Below are positions 3,848-26,407 of a DNA stretch of 64,000 nucleotides, one piece after another. The notes under the pieces are model-generated. The model saw only the letters and a program-made list of their open reading frames with translations, did no database searches and was not told where the DNA came from. The stretch is from assembly GCA_964304625.1 (NCBI GenBank), contig OZ199838.1, forward strand, positions 1,499,158 to 1,563,157. The letters run 5' to 3'. The DNA is from Kudoa neothunni. Taxonomy: Eukaryota; Animalia; Cnidaria. A program made the position numbers and the translations under genes. Position 1 is the stretch's first letter; the number at the start of each line of letters is the position of its first letter.

Positions 3848-4611
3848 AAAGGATTGTTTACTTGATTTATAAAAAAATTTTTGTAATTTATTAAGTGAAA
3901 TATTTGAACTTTTGCCACATAAATTAGAAATGTTGATATACCTATAAACTAAGAATATGGAGACTAAAAGGTAAAACGGTACATAATTATGCAGTTTTTA
4001 CACGTCTATAGGGGAGCAACCTATTTTTTCAAATAAACGATAATTAATGCTTGTTGAATATACATACGTCATATATACATGTGTTCAGGTATAATACATA
4101 TTTATTTATAAGAAATGAATGCTTAACTTGAGTTGTAAAAGAAAAATTTATTCATAAATAACCTAGAAATCTTTTTGTTTGAAATATTGCATTGATATAC
4201 ATACTACATTGTATATGTCGTACGGTGTTGAGTGGTACTTTTATCTGGAAATATGATTAAATGGTTCTTCTGGTTTCCGAATAATTGATCATTTATCGAC
4301 ACGTAATGTCAATAAAATCCAAACGAAATATGAAATTTTTTCCGGATAATCAATGCTCGACTGTATTTCATATAGATGTAATATAATTAAGTTCACAATT
4401 AGTAGCTTTTAGAAAGTTTTTTATCCTTTTAACATCAATTTAAGAAAATCTGGTGAATATGCATTTAGATTGCTATCATTTTCAATAATGTGGGTTTTAG
4501 CGAAATTCTTTTGTAGTTGGACTTTGAAAAATAAATTATTCATTTATTGAGAGATAATAGTTAACTATATGAATTTTTTGATAAATGTAAGAATGATGTT
4601 AAAGTCCAAAA

Positions 4612-5914
4612 GGGCTCGTACGTAATGAGTCGGGGAATGGAGTCTCCCTACGTAGAATCACCGCATTACGCAAGAGATCTCTATGCGCATTGATGATTTT
4701 GTCAGAAATTTTTATTTTACTTTAATCATTGCTTTATGTATACTTAACTGAATAAATAAAATCAATTTTGACATTATTGCATCTATTTTTATATTGAGCG
4801 AATTGATAGTCTATTAGTGGTCTAAAAAATTTCTAAAGGAATTATGAAGTTGCGAAAAATAAATATAAATGGTAACAACTATTCTTATGCAATAAATGTA
4901 TTTTGATTGTTTCTCATTTGTTCGACTCTAGTATCTCATTACGAATTCACGTTACCCAATTTATAAATATTTAAAAAAATCAAATTTTTGGTGTCATTCT
5001 TGAATCGATTATAATACTGTAAACCTGCTTTCCGACATCACAAATGTCTTTAACTGGGATCGAATTTGTTTGGTTTAATAACTTAAATAGATCTACTTAT
5101 TATTCGAGAGCCTGATTAAATGAAATAGATGGATTCACAATTTACGTTTAATCCTCATCAGATGTGTTGTTATCATCTATTTACCATATTTCACCCTTTT
5201 AATTATTTTTTAAACATATTTTTAATGCATTCTCAGGTGACCACTTTTCACGAACATCATAAAGTTTCTCATTCCATTCTGGTAGTGTTCCAGCAGGAAA
5301 GCTTCCAGTTTCCAGCTTCAACATAACATATTTTAATTTAACCTGGTTTTTATACCCTTTAAATTTTCTACAGTTAAAATGATCGCTATTATTGTTACAT
5401 TCATTTGAAGTGAAACTTCTCGCCATTGTAATGGTATAAACCACCATTCACTCTTACTTAAAGTATCCACTTAGATTTTGTTCTAAACATCACGGTTGAG
5501 GTCTTATTTAAGGTTTTTCGGTAATTTTTCACATTGATTAACCTCCTGATTTAAAAATTACATCTCTTATTAAGATCTCATTCAACGTTGACATTCTTTT
5601 CGGGCCATACTTATCCATAGTCATTTTTTCGAAATTTCTCATCTCGTGTACTGAATTATTTTTAATTTCTCAGAAAAGCTTTTGTAATTTTGCGGTTAGA
5701 TAGATTTTATTATTTCCACGATTACGTACGAAACACGAAACATGAAAAGTTTATTTTCAGGTACAATTTCCATTATGTAGAATCGTTGAATTACACACGA
5801 GCCATGTTTTTGTTTATTTTTCTCATAGTTAAGAGTATTATTTTTATTATAATTAAGAATTAAAAAATTCAAATTTAGTTTTGTGTAAAAAAAGTGGCGA
5901 TTACGTACGAGCGC
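4612..5914. mobile_element. ~1.3 kb non-autonomous DNA transposon bounded by 15-bp terminal inverted repeats (possibly MULE-like)
   Basis: GGGCTCGTACGTAAT at 4612-4626 versus ATTACGTACGAGCGC at 5900-5914 (14/15 inverted match). Decayed internal minus-strand ORF with CNNNSDHFN, loosely like the MULE TNNxxESxN motif. No TSD found. Confidence 0.55.
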
Positions 5915-7756
5915 TATTTCACTAAACATCATCTCGTTTCATGATTCAAAGTTGAGCTACAGATACATACATATATGTTATTAAAAATATTTACAAAATT
6001 ATTATTTTATTTAATTAGATATATTTTACATGTTTCAACATCATTATTTCTTTGTTATTATATTCAAATTGAATGGATAAATTTTTATTGTCGTTAAAAA
6101 CCCGTTAATTTTTGTGACAGCAAGTCAAAATTGTCTGAACAACTTCCAGAAACGGACATATAAAATTAGCTCATAAATCATTTTAGATATCTTTTCTAGA
6201 TGTGAATTGGATTCCAAGCATAACTCGAATTTTACCTTAGAAAACTTTTACACATTAAAATAATTATTTTTTTTATTGAATAATGTAGTCTTATGTAAAT
6301 TGACCATTTTTAAATTAATGCATGACCTATAATCCATAAAAACTCCTAAAGTACTAAATTTTTTTACTTATTTGTTCATCTAAAATAAATCGGTTTTCTT
6401 GACTCTAGTCTAATGCCTTAAATCAATTATAAACTACAGCATAAAAATTATTTTTGAACTATTTTCCAGAATATTTCATATTTCTTATGGATGAATCCGA
6501 GCTTTCTTTACACGAGGAAATCGATTCGGCATTATTGTTTCATCAGTTTTCAAAGCAGAAATAGGTAAGAGAACAAAATTACCCAAGAATGTAAATGATA
6601 TACCTGTATTTATTCGCAATTTTTTTAAGAATGGGTCAATAATAAACTTCTCTTTAAATCTAAATTATTTGCAATTTTATCGTGGACGCAACTAATCAAA
6701 AAAAAGGATTTTGAAAATTAGGGTTGGAGTCGAAAGTTACGTAAAATACATAATCCCTATTTTTATAAACAACTTCTTTACAAATTATTTTTCTCTCGAA
6801 ACTTTCTTTTATATTTGCATAAAATAAACTGTCTTAATTTACAGAAATAGTTTTAACTCTGATAATTATATATAAGCGTAGAAAAAGTAAATGTACGTAA
6901 AATCGATTACCTACTATAAAAGATTATTGTGTATTATCAACAAAGTCATTATTTATAATTATATACCTACTTCAGAAAGATTCATATGTTAAAACTCACT
7001 CTTACATAACCATTTTTAGATATAAAATAGTTACGAAAACGAGAAATTGAAATTGGCGCGCAAGCACAAAAAAATAGATCGATGTACGAATATCGACTAT
7101 TTTTAGCCATTGTTCACACAACAAATACAAAACAAATTTTCGCTACATTTTAAAGAGAGGATGAAATTATTACACAATCGATACTTAAAAATATGATTAT
7201 TAGTTAATTTTCATTTTTTCCATTAAAAATTAAAATAATGAGTAATATATCACCTCCAATAAGACAGTAAGAATTTCGGAACGAAAGGGCTAAATTAGTT
7301 AACATAAAATTAACCTTCTTGATATGCAATTAATTGATTTTCGTTGATATCAAAATGAAACGTAAATTAAAATATAATTACCTAGGAGGAATAAAATAGG
7401 TTTCAAATTAGAATGTGCGTTATTATTTGCTTTACCGAACTCCTAACATCCAACGCTACGATCCAATAATTATACATTCGCCTCAGCTGTGCTACCCCCT
7501 CCCAGAAGGAATCAGTTATTAAGCTTAGTAATAATTTTTCACAAATATTATACAATAATTTTAACAATACTTCAATAGGAAATTGGAAAAAATTCGTTTA
7601 CACTATAAAACTCCCCAATAATCAAAACACAACAAATTAATAGGTGTAAATTGTGTTAAAAAATCAACAAACGACAATGCCATAACAACATTTACTATAT
7701 CAAGTAATCAAATACTCCTATTAACAAGTAACAATGAAAAACAGTCTAAAGAGCTC

Positions 7757-9987
7757 CTAGAAAAAATAGGGCTTGTCCTCGAAAATATCAAGATCAATGT
7801 TTTCCCCATCCAAATAGGTTCCAGTTTCGTTACCAGCAACAATGAGGTATTTTTGTGAGAGTTCGTTGGCTAGTTTGGCTATTTCGGATTTGGGATGGAT
7901 GCACAAATTTTCGAGCGTATCCATTGCGCCGGAAATGTCAAATCGTTGTTGTAGATCGCGGCGAAAATCAATGCAGACCTAATTGGAAAAATTTCCAGTA
8001 TCTCGTTAAATTACACAACACACACACACATCCAAATCACATACTTTAAAAATTCCAATATAACTTTCAAGCGCATGTTTAATCATCTAAAAACAATTAT
8101 ACATCATTCACTGAAATTAAAGAAAAACGTCCCCAACAAAAAACCACTCACATTAGAATCCTTTGATTTGAGAACTGTATGCAACGCATCAAATATTCCC
8201 ATATGAACCAGTCTCATGTTCTAATGGAACAACAAATACTCCTGTTTAAGTTATTGAATGAATATTACGTCATTTGTGCTGCCATTGTGGACAATATTTG
8301 AGACAACCCAAAGAGCTTCCTTTTGATGCATAAACAATCCATGTTGTAGGTGTCTAAGCACTCGATCAATAATAGAAGGTTCGATGATCATCTAAACAAC
8401 GAATGGAAGTGTGTAAAGTGGTTGGGGTGTATTACTCGCATTTGATCATGGGTACCAGCAGCAATGTTGGAAAGCACCCATAAAGTCTCCTGTATAATTC
8501 GTACATCTTCCAATTCCAACAACATTCCCAGTTGAGTTAACACGTTCAGTTTGCACACATAGTCGGTGTGTGTGTCGGGGCCGGCGGCAAGATTTCCCAA
8601 ACAACGTATAATACCAAGAACTAATCGAGAATCGCCGTGAGTGAAAAAATTCACCGCAATACGAAGAATATCCGATTCCACAACCACATTGGCGTTAGCT
8701 TGACAGGAGTCAATCAAAAAACTGAGACTCCATAACGCATCGGATACAACCTTCGAGTCGTTTGGAAAACCAATCAACAAATCTTTGATTATGGCGAGCG
8801 ATTGTAAAGTGTATACCGTTGGTATTGGTTCATCTTTTGAACGAACTATGTTGATCATCAGCCAAGCGATGTTTTGAAGAAGCGGAATAAAATTGACTTT
8901 ATCGGGACTGTTGGCAGCTTTCAACACAATCTCGTAGATAAGCTTCAAATAGCCCATTTCAATGACTTTGTCTCTCAATTCGGGCCCTTCTCCAACAATA
9001 TTGGCCAATGTCCAAGCTGTTTGTTCGGCCACCTTTACATGGGGTGATTGTAACGTTTTGAAGAGCAATGGTAGAAAATCTGCCAATGCCATCATTTAAA
9101 ACCACACTCATTATAACCAAAATACTATTATCCACAACAGCTAAAGTCTGATGTGATTCTCCAGATGCAATGTTAGTGAGTGACCATAAAGCTTCATATT
9201 GTACGTCAGGTCTAATAAAAACCTTCTATTAACAGTCAACTTTGACCCAACCAAATTACTCATTTTCACGTTCTATACATTTGTATAGAGCTGGCAAAAC
9301 ATTGATCCTAAATTGTGAAGTAGGTAGGTTGATTAGTATAATTTTTAAATATTGGTTCGGTTGAAGAACTCCAAATAATATCAATCTATTATTTATCGCA
9401 ATTACTTTATCAATGCATCCACAGGTCTATAATCCCGATTACTTAGGATAGTTCGAATAGTCTTGAGCGCAATAAAACGTTCATCGTAGTTATCACTGAG
9501 AGCCTCCTATGTATTGTTATCATAATTATTAACTGAATTGTTAAAGTTGGACATGTCGAAATGTAATCTGTCAAATCAACCTTAATAAGTTCATCTTCGT
9601 TTTTCTCCTTTACAACAACAATAATACTCAACCAAAACAATCATATCGATCTCACACTTACATCCAATACAAATTTGGTCTGCGCCAAAGAGTTATTCAT
9701 TCCAAGCCTAGAATTATCTTCATCTCGATTTGGCATCATTCGTTTCTGCTGAATTATCTCATCTCGTTGGCTCTACAAATTGTACCAATTCATTCCACCT
9801 AGCAAGCTCCACAAAGGGTGATAATACTTGACGTAATTCAATGGTTTGATTTGTGCGTTGATTACGTATATCCTAGAATAAAAGAAGGAGTTGATTGTAT
9901 TGTATAATTGGTTGTGGGTGGTATTAGGAGATTCTAAATTACCGAAACATCAACCTTTGCTTTATACAACTTTTTATGCTTATCCAT
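7757..9987 (-). CDS. KPNA: Importin subunit alpha (karyopherin alpha), multi-exon
   Basis: N-terminal IBB-like segment (ELRQSQRDEIIQQKR); ARM-repeat WxxxN motifs WSLTN, WTLAN, WLMIN, WVLSN, WVVSN; NIASG/NIVGEG/NLAAG; ends ...DKPYFF*. Short GT-AG introns. Confidence 0.95.
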
Positions 9988-10917
9988 CACTGCCAAAGAT
10001 CAATTTGAAGCAGCGTGAGCATCTATACTTGGTATTAGCATTGCGGAGGTATTAGCGGGATTGTTAGAACTTTTTACATTGTTATAATCTATCTATTTCA
10101 ACTTTTTTAAGATCGTTAAGCAACGCTGAGCATTGTGTATAAAGTGCATAAGTTTTAATTGGGCAAGCGAATATTTTGTTTTGAAAAGATCTCTCGGTAA
10201 ACCATTGCAATAAAAACTAACATTCTATTGAAGATGTGTTCGATTATAAATCACATATTAGTGGAAGAATAGAGTGGATTTTGTATGCATGTAACAAATT
10301 GACGGCAACTCGCGCATAATCTGCCCGATCAGAACACCACTGAGGACGCCGACTATCTTAACCTTAACACGGTTTATTTTCGGACAGTATAACTTTAGAA
10401 TACTGCAAATTATTGATTGAACTCTACAGTTGATTTAACACTGTGGTAGTGGTCAACAACTGTTACCGAATTATGATACAGAACTGAATGGTTTATTAAT
10501 GCCGCTAATATTTTGACGGTAGCGAAAAGTAATCCCGCAAAGGCTGTGAGTGTCAAATTCAATATGTTGGAAAACATTTGGGGATTATCTACCTTAACTC
10601 ATGAAAATAGCGATTTATCGAAATTTACGGTTTTTAGAAAATTTAATAATATTTCCTAATTAACCCTTTAATTAATGTACTCTAGGATTAAAAAATAGAA
10701 CAGGTTTTATGCGATCATTTGTTGGAAAGAATTTTTTCAAGTAGAAATATTGACAATTCTAGGGGATATACAAAAACGATAAGGTGTTACAACGTAAATA
10801 AATTAGATAATAATCTCGATAATTCTACGAATACCGCTTTCGTCAACAACCGTCGCATTAACTTTTAAATCCTTGGTTCGATTGACAGTGTGTTTTTCCT
10901 CATGAAAGCTTCTACAG

Positions 10918-11562
10918 TAACTAAAAGTCATGTGACTGACCAATTTGACGCACTTTTTAAAAATCCATTTAGTTAGAATATTGATTGGTCATTGTTTATG
11001 TAATATTTTTCTTATAATATTTCAATCAAAATTGTTAAAAGATTATTTAAAACAGTTGCTAAATAATGTAACTAAAAGTCATGTGACTGACCAATTTGAC
11101 GCACTTTTTAAAAATCCATTTAGTTAGAATATTGATTGGTCATTGTTTATGTAATATTTTTCTTATAATATTTCAATCAAAATTGTTAAAAGATTATTTT
11201 AAACAGTTGCTAAATAATGTAACTAAAGGTCATGTGATTGACCAATTTCACGCACTTTTTAAAAATCCATTTAGTTAGAATATTGATTGGTCATTGTTTA
11301 TGTAATATTTTTCTTATAATATTTCAATCAAAATTGTTAAAAGATTATTTTAAACAGTTGCTAAATAATGTAACTAAAAGTCATGTGACTGACCAATTTC
11401 ACGCACTTTTTAAAAATCCATTTAGTTAGAATATTGATTGGTCATTGTTTATATAATATTTTTCTTATAATATTTCAATCAAAATTGTTAAAAGATTATT
11501 TTAAACAGTTGCTAAATAATGTAACTAAAGGTCATGTGATTGACCAATTTTACGCACTTTTT
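10918..11562. repeat. 151-bp tandem repeat (about 4.3 near-identical copies)
   Basis: Period 151 (ORFs at 10945 and 11096 are near-identical); the units differ at only a few positions. Confidence 0.97.
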
Positions 11563-13580: not shown

Positions 13581-15748
13581 TTAACTTGTAAACAAAAATA
13601 AATTGTGAATTTTTAAATTTCAAATCTTTATATCATTCATCGTTGTTATTAGTGATATGTTTTGAGATCTGATGTATTTAACCTTGCAATTTTCGCTCGT
13701 CCCAGAAAGAGATCTACTTTGAGAACGACGAGGTTATAACAAATATTATGTGACTAATCGATATATAATATATACGAATACTTAGGCTTCATCTTATAAA
13801 TTCGTTTACATAACTAAAAAAATATTAGATAAAATATATAGGTTTCTTCGACACTCGAATTGTATGAATTTATTCTATAAGAATTCCTATCTATAAGCAC
13901 CAACAATAATTTTTCAAGGTATAGTGAAACTCTTTCCGAACTTTATCTATCGTTTGACGAGAAACGCGAATAGAAAATTTTTGAACGAGCTTTTCTGATA
14001 ATTGATTGAATGTCAGTTTAAAATTTTCATATACTTCTCAAACAAAAAATTGTTTTGTGCACTTCACTCAACAATGGGCGGCGATCACCTCAAGTTGTTA
14101 ACAGTTGTTAACCTTTGAAACAAACCCGGCACATTGTTTCTCTTCAATATTCTACGTACTGTAGATTCGGGAATATCTAATGACTCAAAAATCTGACGGT
14201 TCGTCTTTCCAATCTTATTTATTTCGATAATCTTTTAAAATTGTTACTCACTTCCACATGGTGAGTAAATTTAGCCCTATGTTCGGCATTAACTTTCTCA
14301 TATTTTTTATTATTAGAATTACTATTTTCAAATTGATTAGGCATTCTTATGCTTTCACTGGAGAAACAGTGAAAATATGCGTGGCATTTGCATCTTGAAT
14401 GAACATGTTTACATATAGATTGAGCCAATCAATAATATTTTCCATTTTTGGCCAATCTTGATTGAAACACATATGCCACGCTCTCTTTTTAACTCTGTTT
14501 GAATTTTCACCCATACTTTTAAAATAATGTACGTCTATAACTCCAAAATATGTTTATTCGAATAAACTAAAATATTTTAAAGATAACGTCGAAATAGCCA
14601 AACTCAATTACAGAATAATAAGAAAAATGGATCAAATAATAATTATTCAAGAATCTGAAAACAGCGCGTTTCCAACTATAATGATATCTTTTTAAGATTT
14701 CGAATCATTTTAATCCTCATCACTATTAAAACAATAAATATGATTATTTTACCTAATTATAAAACTTATTATTTATAAACTGATCTCAACAAATTTATCA
14801 ATCTACTAGTTTTGATGAATAAGTAAAAAACCCCCAAGAACCCATGATTAGTAGATAAATCTCAAGGTTTGGACTTCCAGCTTAGAAGATTATTTTACTT
14901 GTTGTCAGTTTCAGTTATTTCACACAACACAAATTGACACTGAAATTTTGACAACTATTTGTAATCTTCTTTGAAGGAAAAATTGAATTTTATAGAGAAT
15001 ATCATTTTTTAGGATAATATGGTAAAATATTATGTCAACAAATCTTAGATTATCAACTATAGTTGATATACAATATTTCACTTTTTTTTATTTAATAAAT
15101 GATTTTAATAAAAGTTGGAATTGAGCATTTTAATTTTATTCTTACGAATCATAACAACAGTTACACATTAAACCAATCTAATTAATGTAATATTTAAACT
15201 AATTATGTTTCAATTAACTTTTAATAAATTTTATATCCTCATGTTAATATTTGTGAGCAAAATACAATAAACTAGAACCTATAACATAGGAAACCCGTAC
15301 AAAACTGCTGAATACGAATAGCTATATAAATTAATGTAGCTACCCCAAATTTTGCATAGAAATAAGTATCTACGCGATCATTTATATACAAAAATAATAT
15401 TTTATTCAATAAGAATGTATCTCCACATAGATTAAATTATTTAATTGATTTATGCAAATAATTAATCAATATTATAACATAATTATTTCATGAAAAATTG
15501 AATCAATAAAAGAAATCATACTCAAAGTTGGAATTCTCATGATAATTGTACTTCACCAGTCACTACCTCAATCCTTCAATCGACCAAATCGTGAGGGGAT
15601 TGAACCTTCTTATTTAACAGTTCAATGGAAATACTTTTCATGATCTAACAAATAAAACTGAGATTAACCAATTATGTTTCTATAGAAAAAATCATATATT
15701 TAAAGAAACGAATTGTCAGGGTTGATAGAAATTTTCAAATTGAAAAAA

Positions 15749-17971
15749 ATGTCCAGACCTAACCGAAAAACACCCTTTTTCGCATTGGTACGTAAAATTT
15801 TAAATTGAAAAGATTGATTTTTAAATGAAATATTATTAAGATAGTGGTTTTGTTGAGCATCAGCCATTTTGGCCGATCGTTCGCAATTACTGAGGTGATA
15901 GATTTCACTGTGTTGGATCAAGAAATTGCTCAACGTGTTGACGACTTGATGGCATCGGGGAAATATGACCTATCCTATTTCACTGATTTCACCTTTGGTG
16001 CCAACCTAACATATGCAGACTCGACAAAAGCAATGGTTGCCTCCAGCGATATAAGATGCTCTAGAGTTGGTGCCTATTATCTTGAAAATGGTGGCAACAT
16101 GATTGACGCTGCCGTTGCTACATCTATTTGTATTAATGTGATCGAAATCGCATCTTCAGGTGCACTTATAAATATAGCCACAAAATTGAGCTTTTTTATA
16201 TCGGATAGGATTTACTGGAGGTGGTGCATCGCTGTTTTTATTGAACGGCCGTGTTCAAACATTGGATTTCGCCCCATACCCCACCAAGAGTATTGTCAAC
16301 GATGAAGACATATATGAAGGAGGATGTTGGTCGTGCTTTGATATATCTCTTTTAATTGTGAATTTTAGCTGCTAGAGCGTTGAAAATTCCTGGAATGGCT
16401 ATGGGATTGTACCAACTGTGGCAAAAGGGAGGAAAAATTGAATGGAAGTCATTATTTGATATTCCTATCCTAATCGCTTACAATGGTTGGGAAGTCAAAC
16501 CATCTCTGAGAAGACAGCTAGTTGCAAATGAATTTCCTTTAAGTCTTGATCCTTTCCTCAAGTAATATTGAACTATTACATCAGGGGAAACACCAGTCAA
16601 TTTCCTAATATTTAATTTAGACAAATTTTATTTAACGGTAATGTGGTAAAAAGTATTGGAGATAGAATTGTTAACAAACCATTGACAAGAACACTCCATT
16701 TGCTCTCGATGGACTATAAAAACATGTACTTTGGAGCTATTCCATCACTTATGATGAACCAAATTGGACAAAAATACTACGACAGTCTTATGAGTGAAAT
16801 CAGCCAATACCAAACAAGGGTTTTTGAAACAATGTCTCTTGACCTGAATGATGAGAAAAAGATGGTTACTATACAAGGAAACCATGGTGGATCATTGGCT
16901 GCCTATATTATAAACGCAATAAGAGGTATAGTTTATTTTAAACATATTTATTTATAAGAAAAAAAATTATTTCCACAAAATAGGATATAAAAATGCTAGA
17001 CCTGAAGTATTTCACGGAGATGGAACTGTTGATGACAGTTATTACGTGACTCTTTATGATATTCTTAATAATGGTCATATTCTTATGCCTAATGCGGAGG
17101 GAGACAAAGCTGTGAGTTTAAAATTTTGTTTAGAATCGAGTTTGCGTATTTTGGTTTAGATACAACTAATCAAGGATGCATACAACAACTACACAAACGA
17201 TGTGCCCACTATAGAATTACCCGCAGCTAGAAAATTAACAAAAGCAAAAGAATCATTGTTAGATAGCGAATATAAGGAAGAAGAGGATATTCCAGGTTCA
17301 TCTTCTGTGGTTGTCTTTGATGAATGTGGAAATGCTATATCGATGAAAGTAGCCATCAACCAATTGTAAATTTTTTGAGGAAAATTGGTCGGGTCTAGCT
17401 TGATGTGTATTATAGATTCGGTGGTGTTTTCAGTTTCCCTGAACTGGGTCTTGTAGCTAACACCTACACAGGGGTTAAACTAGATGAAAACTTGAAGCCA
17501 ATTCCTATTAATACAACTCATCGATTTACTTTCTCTTCACCCATTTTGGTTGTTGGAAAATCTGACAATCGAATCTACCAAATCTATTCGGGAACCGGTG
17601 GAAGAAAGATTGCTTCTGCCGTTGCTCAAGTTCTTGCCAATCATTTCTATATTAACATGCCCATGGGAGTGTCATCGGGGCATTTTAGAATGTTCTCTCC
17701 ATTTGATGATAACTAGTAATCGTTATGAGTCCTTGTAATAAGTAAACGCGTCAATACTGAATTTAGTGTTCATGCTGAAGAAGAAAGACCGATACCAGTT
17801 AAAATTGTTGACCTCCTCGCACAAGAAAGAGGTGTATCAGTGCGTGTCATTCCCTACCATTACATGTCTTCTGTCACTCAAATAGGAGTTACTCGTGATG
17901 CCTTCGGATACCCTGTAAACATATTTGGCCAGGGTGATTTCCGAAGAAACGGAGGAGTAAAAGGAGTCTAA
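15749..17971 (+). CDS. Secreted gamma-glutamyltranspeptidase-like protein, copy 1 (catalytic residues altered)
   Basis: Signal-like MSRPNRKTPFFALIVVLLSISHFG; GGT motifs CSRVGAYYLENGGNMIDAAVA, SGFTGGG, KIPGMAMGL, W..LF..PI..A..GWEV, SGTGGRKIASAVAQV, C-terminal GDFRRNGG. Hand splicing gives an uninterrupted frame. Confidence 0.9.
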
Positions 17972-18580
17972 CCATTACAAACCTATTATTTTCCAATACA
18001 TCAACTTATTCTAATACAATTGGTCCTGATTGTTGATAATTTTCACTGTTTGGCCAATTATAACACAGTTTCTCTATTGAGATTGAGATATATTCCAGTT
18101 TGCGCAATAAAAAATCAAAAAGATTATGCACAAATAAATATTACTTACCCCTAATTTCCCATAATTAATAATATTTTTCATTCTTTATAACAGAATAACT
18201 ATAAAAATGTACGGTTCGAAAACCTTTAGGACTAACCCTTAGAAAACAGTATTGTTTGCGAGTGTAAAAATAGCTCAAATCATATAAAACCATAATTCTA
18301 ACTAAACAATTGTTCATTTTTTGTTTTAAAAACAAACTGAATTCGATACCTTTTATCTTTTATGGAAAATATAATCCGAAGCAAAGTCATATAATATCTC
18401 TTCATTTTTATCAATAATGTACCGGCATCTTATTTTAAAATTTAAATACTACCAATGCAGTTTCTATTTTATTGGTATGAATTCCACTGCTGGAAACGAT
18501 GGAATATTGGTGTCATAATGTGTCAGGAAAAAATCCTATATCATTCAGATGATTTTTACCTTTTATTTATCTGTCTAAAT

Positions 18581-21500
18581 CAATGTTTCCCAACATTAAT
18601 TTTCGTGACCCATATTTTACAAACAATAATCCTGTAATCCACGTAAATATTCAAAATGTTGATTAGAATTTAAAGTTAATTTTCCAATAATATTTATAAT
18701 CAATATTTTATATAATAATTTTATTATGCTTTTCAAACATTAATATTACACTTTAAACGAATATTGTTCAACCACTTAGCTACTTCTGTATCGACTTTTC
18801 AGGTTTGCTTTTTAAAGTTTTTCGTTATTTTCTCACGTTCTAATTATTTTATTATAATTGTTATTTTTAAGAAATCAGTTATTACGGCTCAATGATGTAA
18901 TCAATAAAAAATTAAGAATTAATATAATTTGTTAACAAAAATGCCATTATATTCAATGCAACGAACAAAAAATGTTTTATTTATAATTTCTCTTAATAAA
19001 CACAAATATTAAGTAAAATTTTTGTCATGTTCTCTTTTAAATTCAATAAAATAAAATTTTAACTTTCAAGATCTTTCAGATGAGGCAATTTCAGAATAAT
19101 CGGTAGTTAATTCTACTTTAGTAAGTGCGCATGCTTCGTTTACAATAGATTGGTTTCTTGGTGTAAAATATATTTTCGCACTACATATAATATATAATCA
19201 ACGATACAATTTGATGTAAAAACATATTTTTTAGTTTTTAATTTTTTTATATTAATTTTTGAGTTAAAGCGTAAATATAAGTGCAATATTACCCCATTAA
19301 TTGTCACAACAATTTAATTTTCTTTATTAAATACGTTATATAAAGTCACAAGCGAATCAAAAATTTGTAAAAAAAATATATGAGTAATAAAAATTGTTTT
19401 AAAATAGCCCATTCCAGTTTTCCTCGTAAATTAAAATCAGTATGTATTCCAATACTTTCTTATATTTTTAAATATAAGCGTGTCGTTCATCAATATTCTT
19501 TGATCTTATATAATATAAATTTAGTTCTTTGATACTTTTCTGCTAGGTAATGGCTATTGTAATGGAAGGGAATATCTCCTAAAATAACGCTTGTATCAAA
19601 ATTTTAATTTCATTAATACATATAACAATAAATAAACTATTATCAAATAAATTAGTCAACTTTTTACCTCTAAATTGATCAAGTATGCAGTCATTGTTTA
19701 ATATTTTTCTTCAAAAAATTCATATTTGTATTTATGTATAAGTGATTTCAAAATTTTGTTATGTTTATTTTATACAACAATAAGTAGCGACATATACTAT
19801 GCGTTAATTAAGAACAAGTGAGCCCCTGTTATTGTGGTTTGTTTGCAGAAATGATTGTAAACAAACTATTTTACGATGTAATTTCAATTTCACTTTAGAT
19901 GATTAATTATACATTAATTTGGTTGTTATAATTTTTATTATGTGATTTATCGATATAGATCACCATTTATACTTTTAGTATTAATGTCGATCACGTGAAA
20001 TATTATTATTTAATTTACTTTAATAAAGACATTTCCCGCCAGCGAATATATACAGGATAAATTATCAACTATTCGTAATGCTAAATCTAGTCACAGTGCA
20101 CCAAAATTACAAGAAATCCTATAAGAAAAATTTAAACCTTACTCAAAGAGCCTATAAAATACACAAGTCTACACAAACCAATATGTGCCAAGGTCTGCAA
20201 AATATTGCAATGAATTTATCCTTAGTTCAATAATTGCCATTAAGATAATTGAAGTTACGTTAGAACTAATAACGTTTCGTGACTAGAAAAAATATTAAAC
20301 ATTGTTATAAAATACTTATTTAAAATGATGTAACTAATTTTAAATAAAAAGCGATACCAACGAGAACAATTCGAAATACGATAATTAGGTAAAAAATAAC
20401 CGGCAGAATGAAAGAATCAATAGTATTAATATAAGTATAATTTGCTCAAATAAATATTAGATATTAAGCGTTAAGCAAATCAAAAGACTTAAGTGAATAA
20501 AATTTCTCAAGCATCCTCAACCAATATACTTAATAATGACTTGTCTGAAGACTTGTATAATATGTAAAGCGATCAACGGATAGATAAGCACGATGTTGAC
20601 GATAATTTCTATAGTTAAGTAATCAAACAAAATTTTTTATTAAATTTTTATGGATTTAGAATTTCCCTCTAAAATAAACAATAGGAAGACCTAATGGCTG
20701 TGATCTAACAATCATTAGATTGTCTAAAAAACGAAGATGAGCAATTTAAATTCATGTAAAGTATACAAACAATAAAATATTTTTTTAAATATATATCAAT
20801 TAAATATTAATTTTATTTTCATTTTCATTTTTTAGGACAGGAAAACAAGTCAAAAATCACAACTATTTGATCTTAAAATGGTTATAGCCACTTTGTAATA
20901 AAGTCAACTGAGAAAAATATTTTTTCTTGTTTTTTTCCATCTTTGATCAAGAAAAGAAGATAGAATTGACAGAAATAAAAGGAAAAAATGAGTGTATTAT
21001 TAGCATGCGGGTTAACTCTCTTTGTAATTTCCTATAAAGATTACACTCCTTATAATCAGTTTTATTCAAAAACAAATACAGATATAAATTCTTTATGCAA
21101 ATTACAACTTAATTCGTGCATAATTGGCAAATCTAGAGATGAAAAGTCAACTAATATACTTTCTTTTGAAAATTTATTTAATAATAGTTCATTTATTGTT
21201 ATACGTATTTATGAAATTAAAATTTGGATAAAAGCGTTATTTGGGAGATATTCCCTTCCGTTACAATAGCCAGTGTCTTTCTACTATGTTAAATAAGATA
21301 TTTGAAAAATTTATTTCGTTGATTATATATAATATGAGTGACATATAAGGATAGTAAAGAATATAGTTTGGTCGTGAGGGTTACATTATCATAAATAGTT
21401 GCAAGCATATTACTTTGAGGAGTAAAAATCTTTTATTTCATGAAAATTATGTTACGAGAAAGTATTTTTTCGCAGAAAAATAATGCTTACAATGTCTAAA

Positions 21501-22091
21501 TTATGGTTATTAATACGACGAGTCAACTGATGTGTTGAAATAACTTCAGTTTTAATAGTTAATTTTAATTTTTAATGAACTCTCCAAAAATGTTATTTTC
21601 ATTTGGATGTTATTTTTATTTAAGTATTAAATAATTAAAATAGAAAAACTCATGAAATCGTACCGATATGTACCTTGAAATTAAACATGCCCAAGAAAAA
21701 AATGAATATTCACGTGTCTAAAATTAATTGAATAGAAAGATTAACTCGCATCTGAGTCAGATTTTTAGTTAAAGAATTTTTCATGTGCATCAAAAACAAA
21801 CAGACGGAATAATGAGTGCTTCCTGATTAGAAAACGTGTTGATTGCTTTAGATCACATGGTGAGGTAAGTTTTTTACAATTTTTCATATTGAAATATGCC
21901 ATTTTACTCATAAAACAACAATATGTAACTTAAATCAATATAATATTTATATTATATCAATATATCTCGATTCCAAGCGTTAAAATAAAATTTTCTATCT
22001 CAACGGTAACCTACACGACATGAGTCTGCGTTTTCCTGTGCCGTCCAAATTAGTCACAAAATTTTTCATGACCCCAGGCTGGGAAACATAA
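18581..22091. mobile_element. Decayed hAT (Buster/Charlie-like) element(s) between the GGT paralogs
   Basis: Ends CAATGTTTCCCAAC and GGCTGGGAAACATAA resemble Charlie/Buster TIRs; both flanks fit nnnTAnnn (GTCTAAAT / GGCTAAGA); YDESTDV motif at ~21515-21535; minus-strand SRYRSS*VVE near 18780. Confidence 0.55.
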
Positions 22092-23576
22092 GGCTAAGAC
22101 TTTATGGTTGTAGCGGAGCTCATGAACACACAGAGAAAATGCTCAAAAGTATATATTTAATGACATATGAAAATTCATTTTTATGCTTATTTCTATTGTT
22201 AAATATAGTTTTTTAATATTATAGTATAAATTTATATGTTTTTAATAGATAAATTGACTGGAATTATGGAAGAAAGAACTCTATGGAATATTTAATCAAA
22301 TTAGAACCCAATATGTATTCTTAAAGTTATTGTCATACTGTGAACGAAAATAATAAGATTCTTTTAAAAACGTTAAGATGATTTGAAAATACTCATTTAG
22401 ACATTTGATTACTTCATCAAAAATGTAAAGAGGTCGTCTTATATACGGGGCACTTATTCGTGACGCAGGAGGAAACAGCGATGAATTTATGTATAGTAAT
22501 TTAGTATTTAGAGTTCGTTTCAAAATTTTGTTTATTCCAACTCCGCTATACTGACTGGATCTCTTATTGCTTATTTTGTTAAAATACACAAATTAGAGTA
22601 AGAATATTCCATTGTGAATAAGAAACAAATACAAATTAATTACTTATTTTCATTTAAATCTTAAATATAAAAAAATTTTTATTTAATATTTTATACCACT
22701 GGTTCATAGTTTTCAAGTACTCAAAGAGATCAGTTTAGTTTTTTCCTAATGGGAAATGTTAGAGCCAACAAAATAACTCATTTTTAGGAAAGCTTCAATT
22801 AGTACGATAAAAAAATTCTATAGTTGATTAAATCTATCATATTAATTATAACTTTTGTATTGGTCGAAAATGCTATTTTACCGAAGGAATCCACTATAGG
22901 ATAGTAATTAATGTAGGTGATCATTTAAAAAAAGATGAATTCAGACTATTATTCTTCAAATTTATGAATAATTATAAACTAGAAGATTTCATAAATAGTC
23001 TAATTGATCAGAAAATTATATTTAAACTGTGCATCAAGGAAGAATAATCTCTAGAGTTCTGATTCTTTGCTATTCAGGCGACTTCCTATCATATAAAAGT
23101 GCCCATAGATTAAAAAACATAATTCACTTTATTTGATAGATTTGTTTCAAATCAAGTTATAAATATCCTAATCAATTTATTGTAAAAATTTGTTCTTATA
23201 CGAGAAATTAAACATAGAAGATAATTTTCATCCAATAGATACAAATTTTAAGATTAATTTAAATAATATTCCGATTATTATCATTTACATAAAATAAAAT
23301 CAATTTTTATAACAATTATCTATTATAGAAATTATCTCAAAAATACGAACAGCAATTATTTATTCATATCCTCTGGATAATTTTATTTTATCAACCACTA
23401 TACTGAATAGAAGAATCCTAGTCACGAGGGAATGGAACCCTATCACATACTTTAATGGTTCTTATTAAAATTAATTTATACAATTAAAATGCTAATTAGT
23501 AAAATAGGTTTCTATAGTATTAAACAAATATAAAATCAGTCGAATTTTATTTGGCAAGATATTCTAGACTAGAACA

Positions 23577-26087
23577 ATGTCAAGGTTGAACATGAAAAAA
23601 CCAATTTTTATTTTGGTACATTTAAGATCAAATATTCAAACTTGATTTGAATTTATATGATTAGATTTTGATCCTTTTAACGATCAGTAATTTTGGTTTT
23701 TCGACCCCCGACGATGAAGTAGACGAATGTGTTCTAAAATGCAGAAGATATAAGGATGATAATCAATATAGTGTATCTCGTCCATATGGCGGAGACAACG
23801 ATGATGATGATGACGACGACGATGATGATGATGATAGTGGTGACAAATATTTGGGACGTCCTGTATCAGGCGTAGATGATGATGGCGATGATGACGATGA
23901 CAGCGAAGATAAACAAGACGATGATGATGGTGAAGATGTCAGTGATCAAGATGAAAAATACAATGACACAGAAGAGGATGAACAAGAGGATGAGAAAAAC
24001 GACAAGGAATATGAGCCTGTAGATCAAGAAGTTATACAACGTGTTGAGAATTTGTTGAACTCAGGAAAATACAATGTGTCTCATTTTACTGATTTTGAAG
24101 ATGCTCCGGGTGATATGATGAACACATCTGAGAAGGGAATAGTAACCTCCAGTGATGTGAGATGTTCGAGGGTTGGTGCCTACTACCTAAAACATGGTGG
24201 AAATGCCATTGACGCTGCAGTCGCCTCATCACTTTGTCTCTCTGTTATTGAAATGGCATCAGCAGGTATATCATTTGAGAGTATTGCCAAATTTTTACAA
24301 TTCTTAGGATTGGCTGGTGGTGGTGTATCGTTGAGTTATGTGAACGGTCGCATCAGAACGGTTGATTTCCGTCCAAGGGATACAAAAATTGTTGTTTCCA
24401 GAAGAAGGATTAGAAGATGTAGAGGTTAGTTTTATTGAAAAGTCGTGATGTAGTTTTATAAACCGTTGCTAGTTGTAAGAAGATTCAAAGTTCCAGGTAT
24501 GGCTATGGGATTGCACAAACTATGGAAACAAGGTGGTAAACTCGAATGGAAGATCCTCTTTGATATCCCCATCATAATTGCTTCCAAGGGATTCGAAGTA
24601 AAACCTAGTTTTGGCCGAATGCTGAGAATTTCTAAGCGTAGACTATGGCGAGATCGATATCTCAGGTGAAAATTGTTATTAAGACTAATCATGATGTTTG
24701 TTGAATTTAGAAAAATATTATTTATTGGAAAATGCGTCAAAAAGACAGGTAGTCGCATCGTCAACGAAAGACTAGCTAGAACGTTGCATGAACTTTCCAA
24801 AAACTACACCAACATGTATGTTGGAAGAATACCCCAAATTATGGCTAGAAGAATTAGCAGGAGAAACGAAAAAGAGATAGTTGAAGAAGTCGGAAAATAT
24901 GAAACCCCAGTTTTGGACACATTAGAAGTTGACGTCGATGAAGAACATAAGATGATCACCACCTCTAATAACACCGGCGGACCACTCTTAGGATACATGG
25001 TTGATTCTGCCAAAGGTATATATAAAAATAAAAATTTTAACTGTTATGATAATTTAATTGTACTTAAAGAATTCAAAGAAACTCACTCTGATGCCTTCCA
25101 TCCAGATGGCACTGTAGACGATTCAGTTTATTTGAAGACTTTTGATACTATTGGCAACTCTCATTGTCTTTCTTCTCACCTTACCAGTGGTGATCCGGTA
25201 TTAATATAAAACTATAAGAATGGTTCTCTACTACACATAGGAAAAAGTACTCAATGGTTTATTCGCTCGAGCCAAAAAAAATATCTCTACAGAAATACCT
25301 GAAACCAGAAAATTAATGAAGGGTGAATGCCCACTAGACGATGTTGAAGAGGAAGAGGAAGAAGAGGAAGAGGAAGATATTGGCGGTTCAGTGTCACTGA
25401 ATGTTGCTGACGATTGTGGAAATGGAGTCTCAGTCCAAAGCGGAATCAACAGATTGTATACATTGATAATTCTGCTAGAGTGTGGTAATCTTCAAGAATT
25501 TAACTTGTGTTGTATTTAGATTTGGTGGAAAGTTTAGCTTTGGTTCATTGGGTATAATTGGCAATCCTCTATCAGTGATAGGAAGGGATAAGAGAAGACG
25601 TTGCAGAAGATTCCGAAGAGGAAGAAGACACCTCAAATCATATTACTCTCCTTCAATAGTTATTGAAAATAAAAACAACTCACTCAGCGGAATATTCTCA
25701 GGAGCCGGAGGAAGAAAAATCCCATCCGCTGTTGCACAAGTCATGGGAAATCATTATTATAGAGGCATGAGTCTTGATAAATCCGTCGAAAAGTTTAGGA
25801 TGTTTGTTCCATACGGAAATAATAGGTGAAATCTGTTTTTATCATTTTTTCTCAAACATAAACTAAAATCATATATATATAGAGTCTTCTCTGAAGTAGA
25901 AAAACCGATTCCTCGTAGGATTCAAAGATTGCTTCGCAGAAAGAGAATGGCCAGAATTAGAAGAATATGGCGTGCTCGATCATCTGCTGTGTCCGCAATC
26001 ACTATCAGGCGAAACGCGTTCAACAAGCAAGAAGCAGTTGTTGGTGTGGCCGATTTCCGAAAACAATGTGGAGTTGGTTCTGCATAA
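23577..26087 (+). CDS. Secreted gamma-glutamyltranspeptidase-like protein, copy 2, with poly-Asp/Glu and Arg-rich tracts
   Basis: Same exon structure as copy 1; MSRLNMKKPIFIL signal-like start; CSRVGAYYLKHGGNAIDAAVA, GLAGGG, KVPGMAMGL, SGAGGRKIPSAVAQV, ADFRKQCG; intact spliced frame. Confidence 0.9.
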
Positions 26088-26407
26088 CGGCCACGAGATT
26101 GAACTTTATTTATTCTTCTCAATTATTCTAAAAATTATTGGTCGTGAGTTTCACATTATTTGACCGATTTAATCCACAATTCCTTGTGTATTTTTGTGTC
26201 TGTATTAATAAAGTAATATAACAAAAAATTAAATGAAAAAAATCTCTGTTACCTTATTGATTTTTATGATTATTTCAAAATACTTTCTTAAAGATTATTA
26301 AAAAATGTATAGGAATGTTTAATATTTGAAAAAATTAATTAAATGTCAATAAAGAACAGATAATTTTATTTTATGCTAATTATAAAATAAAATATTCCGC
26401 TTAATGT

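Follow-up and report, generated by a model that had tools for sequence, protein, structure and literature searches.

The window analysed here, a 64,000-nucleotide stretch of contig OZ199838.1 of the cnidarian Kudoa neothunni, carries two gamma-glutamyltransferase (GGT)-like genes, hereafter called copy 1 and copy 2. We regard it as about an even chance that both encode secreted pseudoenzymes of the polar capsule, in which the GGT fold is used as a binding or structural unit. As far as their sequences tell, the two proteins are homologs that fall short of an active GGT: they lack the Thr nucleophile, His393, Thr407 and Thr409 (residue numbers are those of Escherichia coli GGT unless given as positions in copy 1 or copy 2), the full set of alpha-carboxyl binders and the full set of alpha-amino binders, and they keep the oxyanion Gly pair and the processing arginines Arg513 and Arg571. 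A 2022 review describes the Thr nucleophile as conserved in all known GGTs (PMC9140057). Mutated but retained GGTs and an uncleaved N-terminal nucleophile (Ntn) protein with Ser are already known; what is new here is that GGT homologs occurring in nature carry Ser where Thr has been described as invariable.

Gene models and active sites of the two copies

Copy 1 (15749..17971, forward strand) encodes 603 amino acids in nine exons, at 15749-15787, 15841-16159, 16209-16325, 16369-16561, 16621-16925, 16984-17111, 17160-17365, 17416-17715 and 17767-17971. Copy 2 (23577..26087, forward strand) encodes 702 amino acids, also in nine exons, at 23577-23615, 23665-24265, 24308-24424, 24473-24665, 24711-25015, 25070-25197, 25241-25455, 25520-25825 and 25883-26087. 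The models were built from the translation of 15730-18000 and 23560-26110 together with a scan for splice sites, and exon 1, with 13 codons in both copies, is predicted. Three RNA runs and one DNA run carrying the same species label yielded no reads. All 16 introns are GT-AG, measure 42-64 nucleotides (nt) and have phases identical between the copies, and neither frame contains an internal stop, which bears out the claim of an earlier note on this DNA that the two genes are intact and share their exon structure. Moreover, a spliced aligner supplied with copy 1 only found each of the eight introns of copy 2. The fifth of these (25016-25069, 54 nt) has no stop, and its retention would add 18 residues in frame.

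The two proteins are 44% identical to each other and about 19% identical to E. coli GGT. The GGT family profile PF01019 matches exons 2, 4, 5 and 8 of copy 1 and exon 8 of copy 2, with two of these matches above the cut-off, and the homology runs along both subunits of each copy. When searched against the PDB, a profile of exon 8 matched GGT small chains exclusively, and exon 7 gave no match. The homology implies an alpha-beta-beta-alpha fold for both copies. With the GGT family (MEROPS T03; E. coli GGT, human GGT1) they thus share full-length homology, a single-chain layout and several intron positions of canonical GGT genes.

How might the proteins be secreted? Predicted signal peptides, each split by intron 1, cover residues 1-28 of copy 1 (15749..15885, forward strand) and residues 1-26 of copy 2 (23577..23703, forward strand), with cleavage sites placed by eye. 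By hydropathy and inspection, both N-termini have a basic start, 11-14 hydrophobic residues and small residues at -3 and -1; the best 11-residue windows score 3.2 in copy 1 and 3.6 in copy 2, and the 19-residue windows 1.8 and 2.0, respectively. A type II anchor instead of a cleavable signal peptide is possible in both. In copy 2, the signal peptide is followed by an acidic arm (residues 27-131; 23704..24018, forward strand; 51 Asp/Glu, 11 Lys/Arg) that is in frame, is assumed to be exonic, is mostly missing from copy 1 and accounts for the extra length of copy 2. In addition, a poly-Glu linker with 13 acidic residues and no basic residue (residues 491-510; 25328..25387, forward strand) directly precedes the nucleophile position of copy 2. 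The body of copy 2 is Arg-rich, with a computed isoelectric point (pI) of 11.7 for the small-subunit region, and copy 1 is mildly acidic.

In a multiple alignment, Ser414 of copy 1 (TCA, 17298..17300, forward strand) and Ser511 of copy 2 (TCA, 25388..25390, forward strand) align with the nucleophile, Thr391 in E. coli GGT and Thr381 in mammalian GGT1. The program hhalign gives the same register against E. coli GGT, a result that is weak on its own. A phase-2 intron lies exactly 68 nt downstream from the start of the nucleophile codon in nine of the nine intact GGT genes of the genome, the three canonical ones included, and therefore the position of the Ser is fixed independently of the alignment. 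No Thr occurs nearby, the nearest being 20 residues away in copy 1 and 28 in copy 2, and this, together with the intron anchor, rules out a misalignment. The earlier note's replacement of the nucleophile Thr by Ser accordingly stands in both copies. An assembly error behind the Ser is unlikely, since TCN codons occupy this site in three separate genes. One sequencing run, X1, holds 97% of the words of the region; it is probably the source sample, and hence not independent support.

The surrounding active site has changed as well. His393 is replaced by Ser in both copies (Ser416 in copy 1, Ser513 in copy 2), Thr407 by Lys430 in copy 1 and Gln527 in copy 2, and Thr409 by Ala432 and Gly529, respectively. 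Gln430 and Asp433 are lost in both, together with the xMDDF motif, so that only Asn411 is left of the alpha-amino binders (Asn411, Gln430 and Asp433). The alpha-carboxyl binders Arg114, Ser462 and Ser463 correspond to Ala, Thr and Phe in copy 1 and to Arg, Ser and Tyr in copy 2, which keeps two of the three. At the RE motif (Arg114-Glu115), copy 1 has Ala141-Pro142 (16271..16276, forward strand) and copy 2 has Arg235-Pro236 (24370..24375, forward strand), the Glu being Pro in both. By alignment, the losses that the earlier note had listed for His, the second Thr, xMDDF and the RE motif are all real; its list did not include the change at Thr407. Its loss of the Ser-Ser pair is correct for Ser463 in both copies and for Ser462 in copy 1; Ser462 survives in copy 2. 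The oxyanion-hole glycines, each pair followed by Arg-Lys, are kept as Gly497-Gly498 in copy 1 (17597..17602, forward strand) and Gly596-Gly597 in copy 2 (25707..25712, forward strand), as the note had stated, but they are not the sole survivors: the Gly at position -1, Asn411, Asp569 and the C-terminal arginines Arg513 and Arg571 (R527 and R595 in copy 1, R626 and R694 in copy 2) are also present in both copies, in addition to Arg114 and Ser462 in copy 2.

A remodelled subfamily in the Kudoa genome

The 40.26-Mb assembly (contigs of 17.2, 12.0 and 11.0 Mb) holds ten GGT-like genes. Three are near-canonical (A, B and C), and seven form one remodelled subfamily with a common exon structure, which comprises copy 1, copy 2 and five genes in tandem 5 Mb away (D to H). 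Four members (D, E, G and H) have Thr at the nucleophile position, and three (F, copy 1 and copy 2) have Ser. None of the seven retains His393; H alone still has most of the glutamate pocket, which the other six have lost. The exchange of Thr for Ser is not the defining event, because the pocket is rebuilt in six paralogs, three of which keep Thr. The subfamily appears to form a graded series, from the near-canonical H through the rebuilt Thr-type D, E and G to the Ser-type F, copy 1 and copy 2. Identity among the paralogs is 34-47%, and 41-47% among the three that bear Ser; the copies are 21-25% identical to the canonical paralogs A and B.

Which positions are held constant? The Gly at -1, a hydroxyl nucleophile, Gly483, Arg513 and Arg571 occur in all seven paralogs, and Gly484 in six of them. 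Among the six rebuilt paralogs, residues of the fold are constant in the alignment, and the replaced positions vary: Thr407 has become A, E, V, Q, Q and K, and Thr409 F, S, E, A, G and A, with T, S, D, N, N and N at Asn411. Such variety is as expected for unconstrained sites. Of the ancestral columns, 5 of 14 with Ser/Thr and 14 of 18 with Gly are invariant in all six; judged against this background, a Ser/Thr that is kept at the nucleophile is nothing unusual. Copy 1, copy 2, F and G have a lid region shortened by about 10 residues.

Two of the other genes call for comment. In paralog H (L026, G000:C1:6666990-6669200, minus strand), the reading frame is broken at three or more places near homopolymer runs, and the gene was read with X at these breaks. 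Its relatives L030 (partial) and L029, from sequencing data described below, are without frame breaks; H could be either a real pseudogene or a product of low-coverage assembly error. In paralog C (L023, G000:C2:7.937-7.940 Mb), Ser-Lys replaces Ser-Ser, and a long Thr/Pro/Cys-rich extension precedes the domain at the N-terminus.

In our trees (the one with 32 rows is a quick version), H is basal, followed by D and E, and then by copy 2, G, F and copy 1. We do not favour a recent tandem duplication as the origin of the pair in the window: in the trees copy 1 joins F and G of the other cluster, a clade of copy 1 plus copy 2 has a p-value of 0.06 in the approximately unbiased (AU) test, and the synonymous divergence (dS) between them is about 2. 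On the branching order of the best tree, Ser had two origins, or one that was followed by a reversal in G; the test does not reject a single clade of the Ser-bearing genes (AU p-value 0.15).

The subfamily is sister to canonical GGTs of Henneguya and Thelohanellus in the trees. When 1.8 billion proteins were searched with a profile of exon 5, four subfamily members were found, and the next matches were Henneguya salminicola KAF0989620.1 and Thelohanellus kitauei KII61910.1, with canonical pockets and pI near 10; these are also the best matches of both copies among the full-length proteins compared. These nearest named relatives support the cnidarian or myxozoan origin that the earlier note had considered. 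A single ENA metagenome assembly supplied three of the four members, the orthologs of copy 1 (L028), E (L031) and H (L030), and L029 (run SRR31175926) contains a near-complete, very basic H-like gene (3888-6024; net charge about +96, pI 10.7). The sister lineage as a whole is strongly basic, with pI 9.7-10.7. Since the H-like gene of L029 reads Thr-Ser-Ser at the nucleophile, the loss of His predates the loss of the pocket.

Purifying selection acts on the large-subunit exons. Copy 1 and L028 are 66% identical over 211 codons, with dS 1.15, nonsynonymous divergence (dN) 0.23 and dN/dS 0.20; L028 ends before exon 6, so this comparison covers large-subunit exons and not the Ser site. Ortholog dN/dS values range over 0.14-0.20, with dS about 1.1 where measured. 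Between paralogs, where synonymous sites are near saturation, the ratio of nonsynonymous to synonymous differences (pN/pS) is 0.47-0.69 in both subunit regions, and open frames and splice sites persist despite a synonymous divergence of 1.1-3.6. These values agree with the earlier note's view that the genes are selected rather than decayed. Because L028 has Arg-Pro at the RE position, where copy 1 has Ala141-Pro142, the loss of Arg114 in copy 1 is recent and followed the split from its ortholog. An ortholog covering exon 7 was found neither in word searches with exon 7 and with the exon-8 profile nor in two metagenome scans.

Probable capsule ancestry and possible role of the copies

GGT is the presumed enzyme behind the poly-gamma-glutamate that fires the cnidarian stinging capsule (PMC5584322). 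Three different GGTs are listed in the polar-capsule proteome of Ceratonova shasta (PMC5566210 supplement 1). We compared these and the Hydra sequences, taken from paper supplements, by eye. DN3369 corresponds to Kudoa paralog A (C1:13.06 Mb) and to Hydra NSP7 (PMC6134521), paralog A being the NSP7 ortholog as judged against the Hydra NSP7 row. DN24913 corresponds to paralog C, long Thr/Pro/Cys N-terminal extension included; this extension resembles that of the most abundant GGT in the C. shasta capsule proteome. TRINITY_DN35999, a truncated sequence, corresponds to the lineage of H and Henneguya, with which it shares SDDLRCSRVG, RTGGP in place of the PPxSG motif, a basic composition and a signal peptide; it keeps GTSH, the only part of its pocket that is visible. 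A BLAST label had pointed to DN3369 as the relevant ortholog, but its sequence is of the NSP7 type and DN35999 fits instead. A nematocyst proteome supplement (PMC8773148) contains a "GGT1-like" group to which four myxosporeans, Myxobolus and Thelohanellus among them, contribute entries; we equate it with DN35999 by the label that the two share.

From these correspondences, a capsule GGT is the probable ancestor of copy 1 and copy 2, and we extrapolate the capsule location of the duplicates from that descent. The link to the capsule drawn in the earlier note gains indirect support from an ortholog of the ancestral gene, matched by eye, in the C. shasta capsule proteome, but the copies are not NSP7. 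NSP7, the cnidarian nematocyst-specific GGT, belongs to the same family and to a capsule-associated lineage, but it is a separate, single-copy gene with a canonical site (paralog A), and the copies group with the Henneguya/Thelohanellus lineage. With that lineage they share the loss of the PPxSG prolines, a predicted signal peptide and, in copy 2 and H, the basic surface. Unlike the copies, the proteins of Henneguya and Thelohanellus still have GTSH, T-S-S-I-N, NNxMxDF and SSM, and one such protein was found per species as compared to seven in Kudoa, six of them with a rebuilt pocket. It appears that Kudoa multiplied one of the three capsule GGTs into a graded series, which as a natural experiment sets the catalytic roles of GGT apart from the structural ones.

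We propose that duplications in the Kudoa lineage of a myxozoan polar-capsule GGT gave rise to the copies. Gamma-glutamyl transfer or hydrolysis at a useful rate would have been lost, and maturation would be slow or would not occur. H (C1:6.667 Mb) would have retained most of the pocket and three other GGTs the chemistry, while six copies would have been retained for their folded surface. Their job is likely structural or binding, in the matrix or wall of the capsule. The Arg-rich body of copy 2, with its Asp/Glu-rich arm and linker, may bind a polyanion such as poly-gamma-glutamate, as well as cations, and the mildly acidic copy 1 may have a different partner. Secretion, capsule location, lack of activity and polyanion binding are what we infer from the sequences.

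A glutathione-type GGT activity of either copy is very unlikely by comparison with mutational data, because each copy stacks most of the changes that singly impair bacterial GGTs. In bacterial enzymes, replacement of the nucleophile Thr by Ser slows processing and cuts activity by about 90%, H393G impairs processing, T407K causes a maturation defect, T398A abolishes the activity of Helicobacter pylori GGT, R114L/D abolishes that of E. coli GGT, and loss of Asp433 abolishes transpeptidation (PMC8062742). The T407K change is the same substitution as Lys430 of copy 1, which also has Ala at the position of the H. pylori T398A mutation, the second Thr. We favour pseudoenzymes because the cleavage residues are kept at no more than the background rate and because the rebuilt pocket positions differ among the paralogs; in addition, the canonical GGTs A (NSP7), B and C are still in the genome. 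Several points weigh on the other side. The self-cleavage parts persist across the subfamily, Ser mutants of bacterial GGTs complete processing given time, Bacillus licheniformis S460A/S461A mutants show higher activity, and extremophile GGTs function without Arg114 and the Ser-Ser pair. Moreover, the C. shasta capsule protein was assigned as an ortholog by eye, from a truncated sequence, and duplicates need not share their ancestor's location.

Retained family members with altered active sites have precedents. The venom gamma-GT CL1Contig6 of Aphidius ervi (PMC4035087) is one of doubtful activity, in which two mutations are reported, unlike the wholesale pocket loss and Ser nucleophile of the Kudoa copies. 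Human GGT2 is likewise a retained GGT with active-site changes and doubtful activity, and the secernin SCRN1, which has Ser for its nucleophile Cys, stays uncleaved (PMC9140057). All three belong to unrelated lineages. The literature we searched contained no report of this Kudoa GGT subfamily. If the copies are indeed dead scaffolds, they represent good but ordinary pseudoenzyme evolution in a fast-evolving parasite.

The copies may instead be Ser-type Ntn hydrolases with a new substrate, a reading that we hold unlikely, though it is the main rival. The precursor would cleave itself at Gly|Ser, the freed Ser would attack an amide, and the Gly-Gly hole would stabilise the intermediate; the pocket, with a shorter lid region and Arg-Lys after the glycines, would have no grip on glutamate with free alpha-amino and alpha-carboxyl groups. 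The substrate could be a polymer such as poly-gamma-glutamate, as for CapD, or an isopeptide bond in capsule maturation. Bacillus anthracis CapD is the precedent in the GGT family for a poly-gamma-glutamate substrate and has basic residues at its acceptor site; unlike what we propose for the copies, it cleaves itself and is active, and the exon-8 profile did not retrieve it from the PDB. The nucleophile of CapD is Thr. Catalysis would explain why nothing other than Thr or Ser fills the nucleophile position in seven paralogs and two outside relatives, why Ser persists in three such divergent paralogs, and why Gly(-1), Gly483, Arg513, Asp569 and Arg571 are kept; the penicillin acylase subfamily includes Ser-nucleophile Ntn hydrolases, and bacterial GGTs gain acylase activity when Asp433 is lost. 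However, the retention of Ser/Thr is within the background rate, the paralogs have no new pocket residues in common, T407K, H393S and T409A jointly predict poor maturation, and the searches found no ortholog with exon 7 that would show Ser to be conserved across species. Between pseudoenzymes and Ser-type hydrolases, the mutational literature favours the former. To the fuller version of catalysis, in which self-cleaving Ser-type GGTs act on poly-gamma-glutamate or capsule isopeptides within a seven-gene Kudoa toolkit that tunes matrix chemistry, the arm and linker of copy 2 shielding a polyanion-binding surface, we give a small chance.

Is the capsule involved at all? The copies could be host-directed proteins secreted by the muscle-dwelling stage, binding or signalling decoys without GGT chemistry, which we consider improbable. 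The lineage-specific expansion and fast divergence of the secreted paralogs, the abundance of a mutated GGT in parasitoid venom and the reported activity-independent effects of the GGT large subunit on host cells fit this picture, but the protein of the ancestral lineage seems to belong to the capsule, and the ortholog dN/dS shows no sign of an arms race. Least probable, in our estimate, is that the duplicates are redundant and being lost, or that they are weak but ordinary GGTs which retain some activity and have taken on no new role. Many active-site residues are lost, Arg114 disappeared from copy 1 after the split from its ortholog, and bacterial Ser mutants retain about 10% activity; against this stand the open frames and conserved splice sites despite the synonymous divergence, the dN/dS of 0.20, the orthologs of copy 1, E and H in another sample, and an upstream motif common to the paralogs.

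Upstream motif and other features of the window

This motif, GGGRATKDAAH, lies at 15595..15605 before copy 1 and at 23428..23438 before copy 2 (both forward strand), about 150 nt before the ATG in each case, and is a possible cis element whose pattern was defined after the fact. It occurs upstream of all six rebuilt paralogs (copy 1, copy 2, D, E, F and G), despite their saturated synonymous sites, and we consider it a candidate cis element of the family. A stricter version occurs at 36 genomic sites and the control at 17; neither A nor C has even a looser version in its upstream sequence. Since most of the remaining 33 genomic sites resemble repeats or are unrelated, we did not use the motif as evidence for a capsule-gene signal.

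Between the two genes, at 19545-21280, lies a 1.73-kb dispersed repeat with terminal inverted repeats of about 105 nt (91-94% complementary) and no long open reading frame. It has some 40 copies in the genome at 68-85% identity, and is likely a non-autonomous DNA transposon. Upstream of copy 1, a 151-nt unit is repeated 4.3 times in a tandem array at 10917-11562 (97% identity), and an armadillo-repeat gene, importin alpha-like by eye, occupies 7757-9095 on the minus strand.

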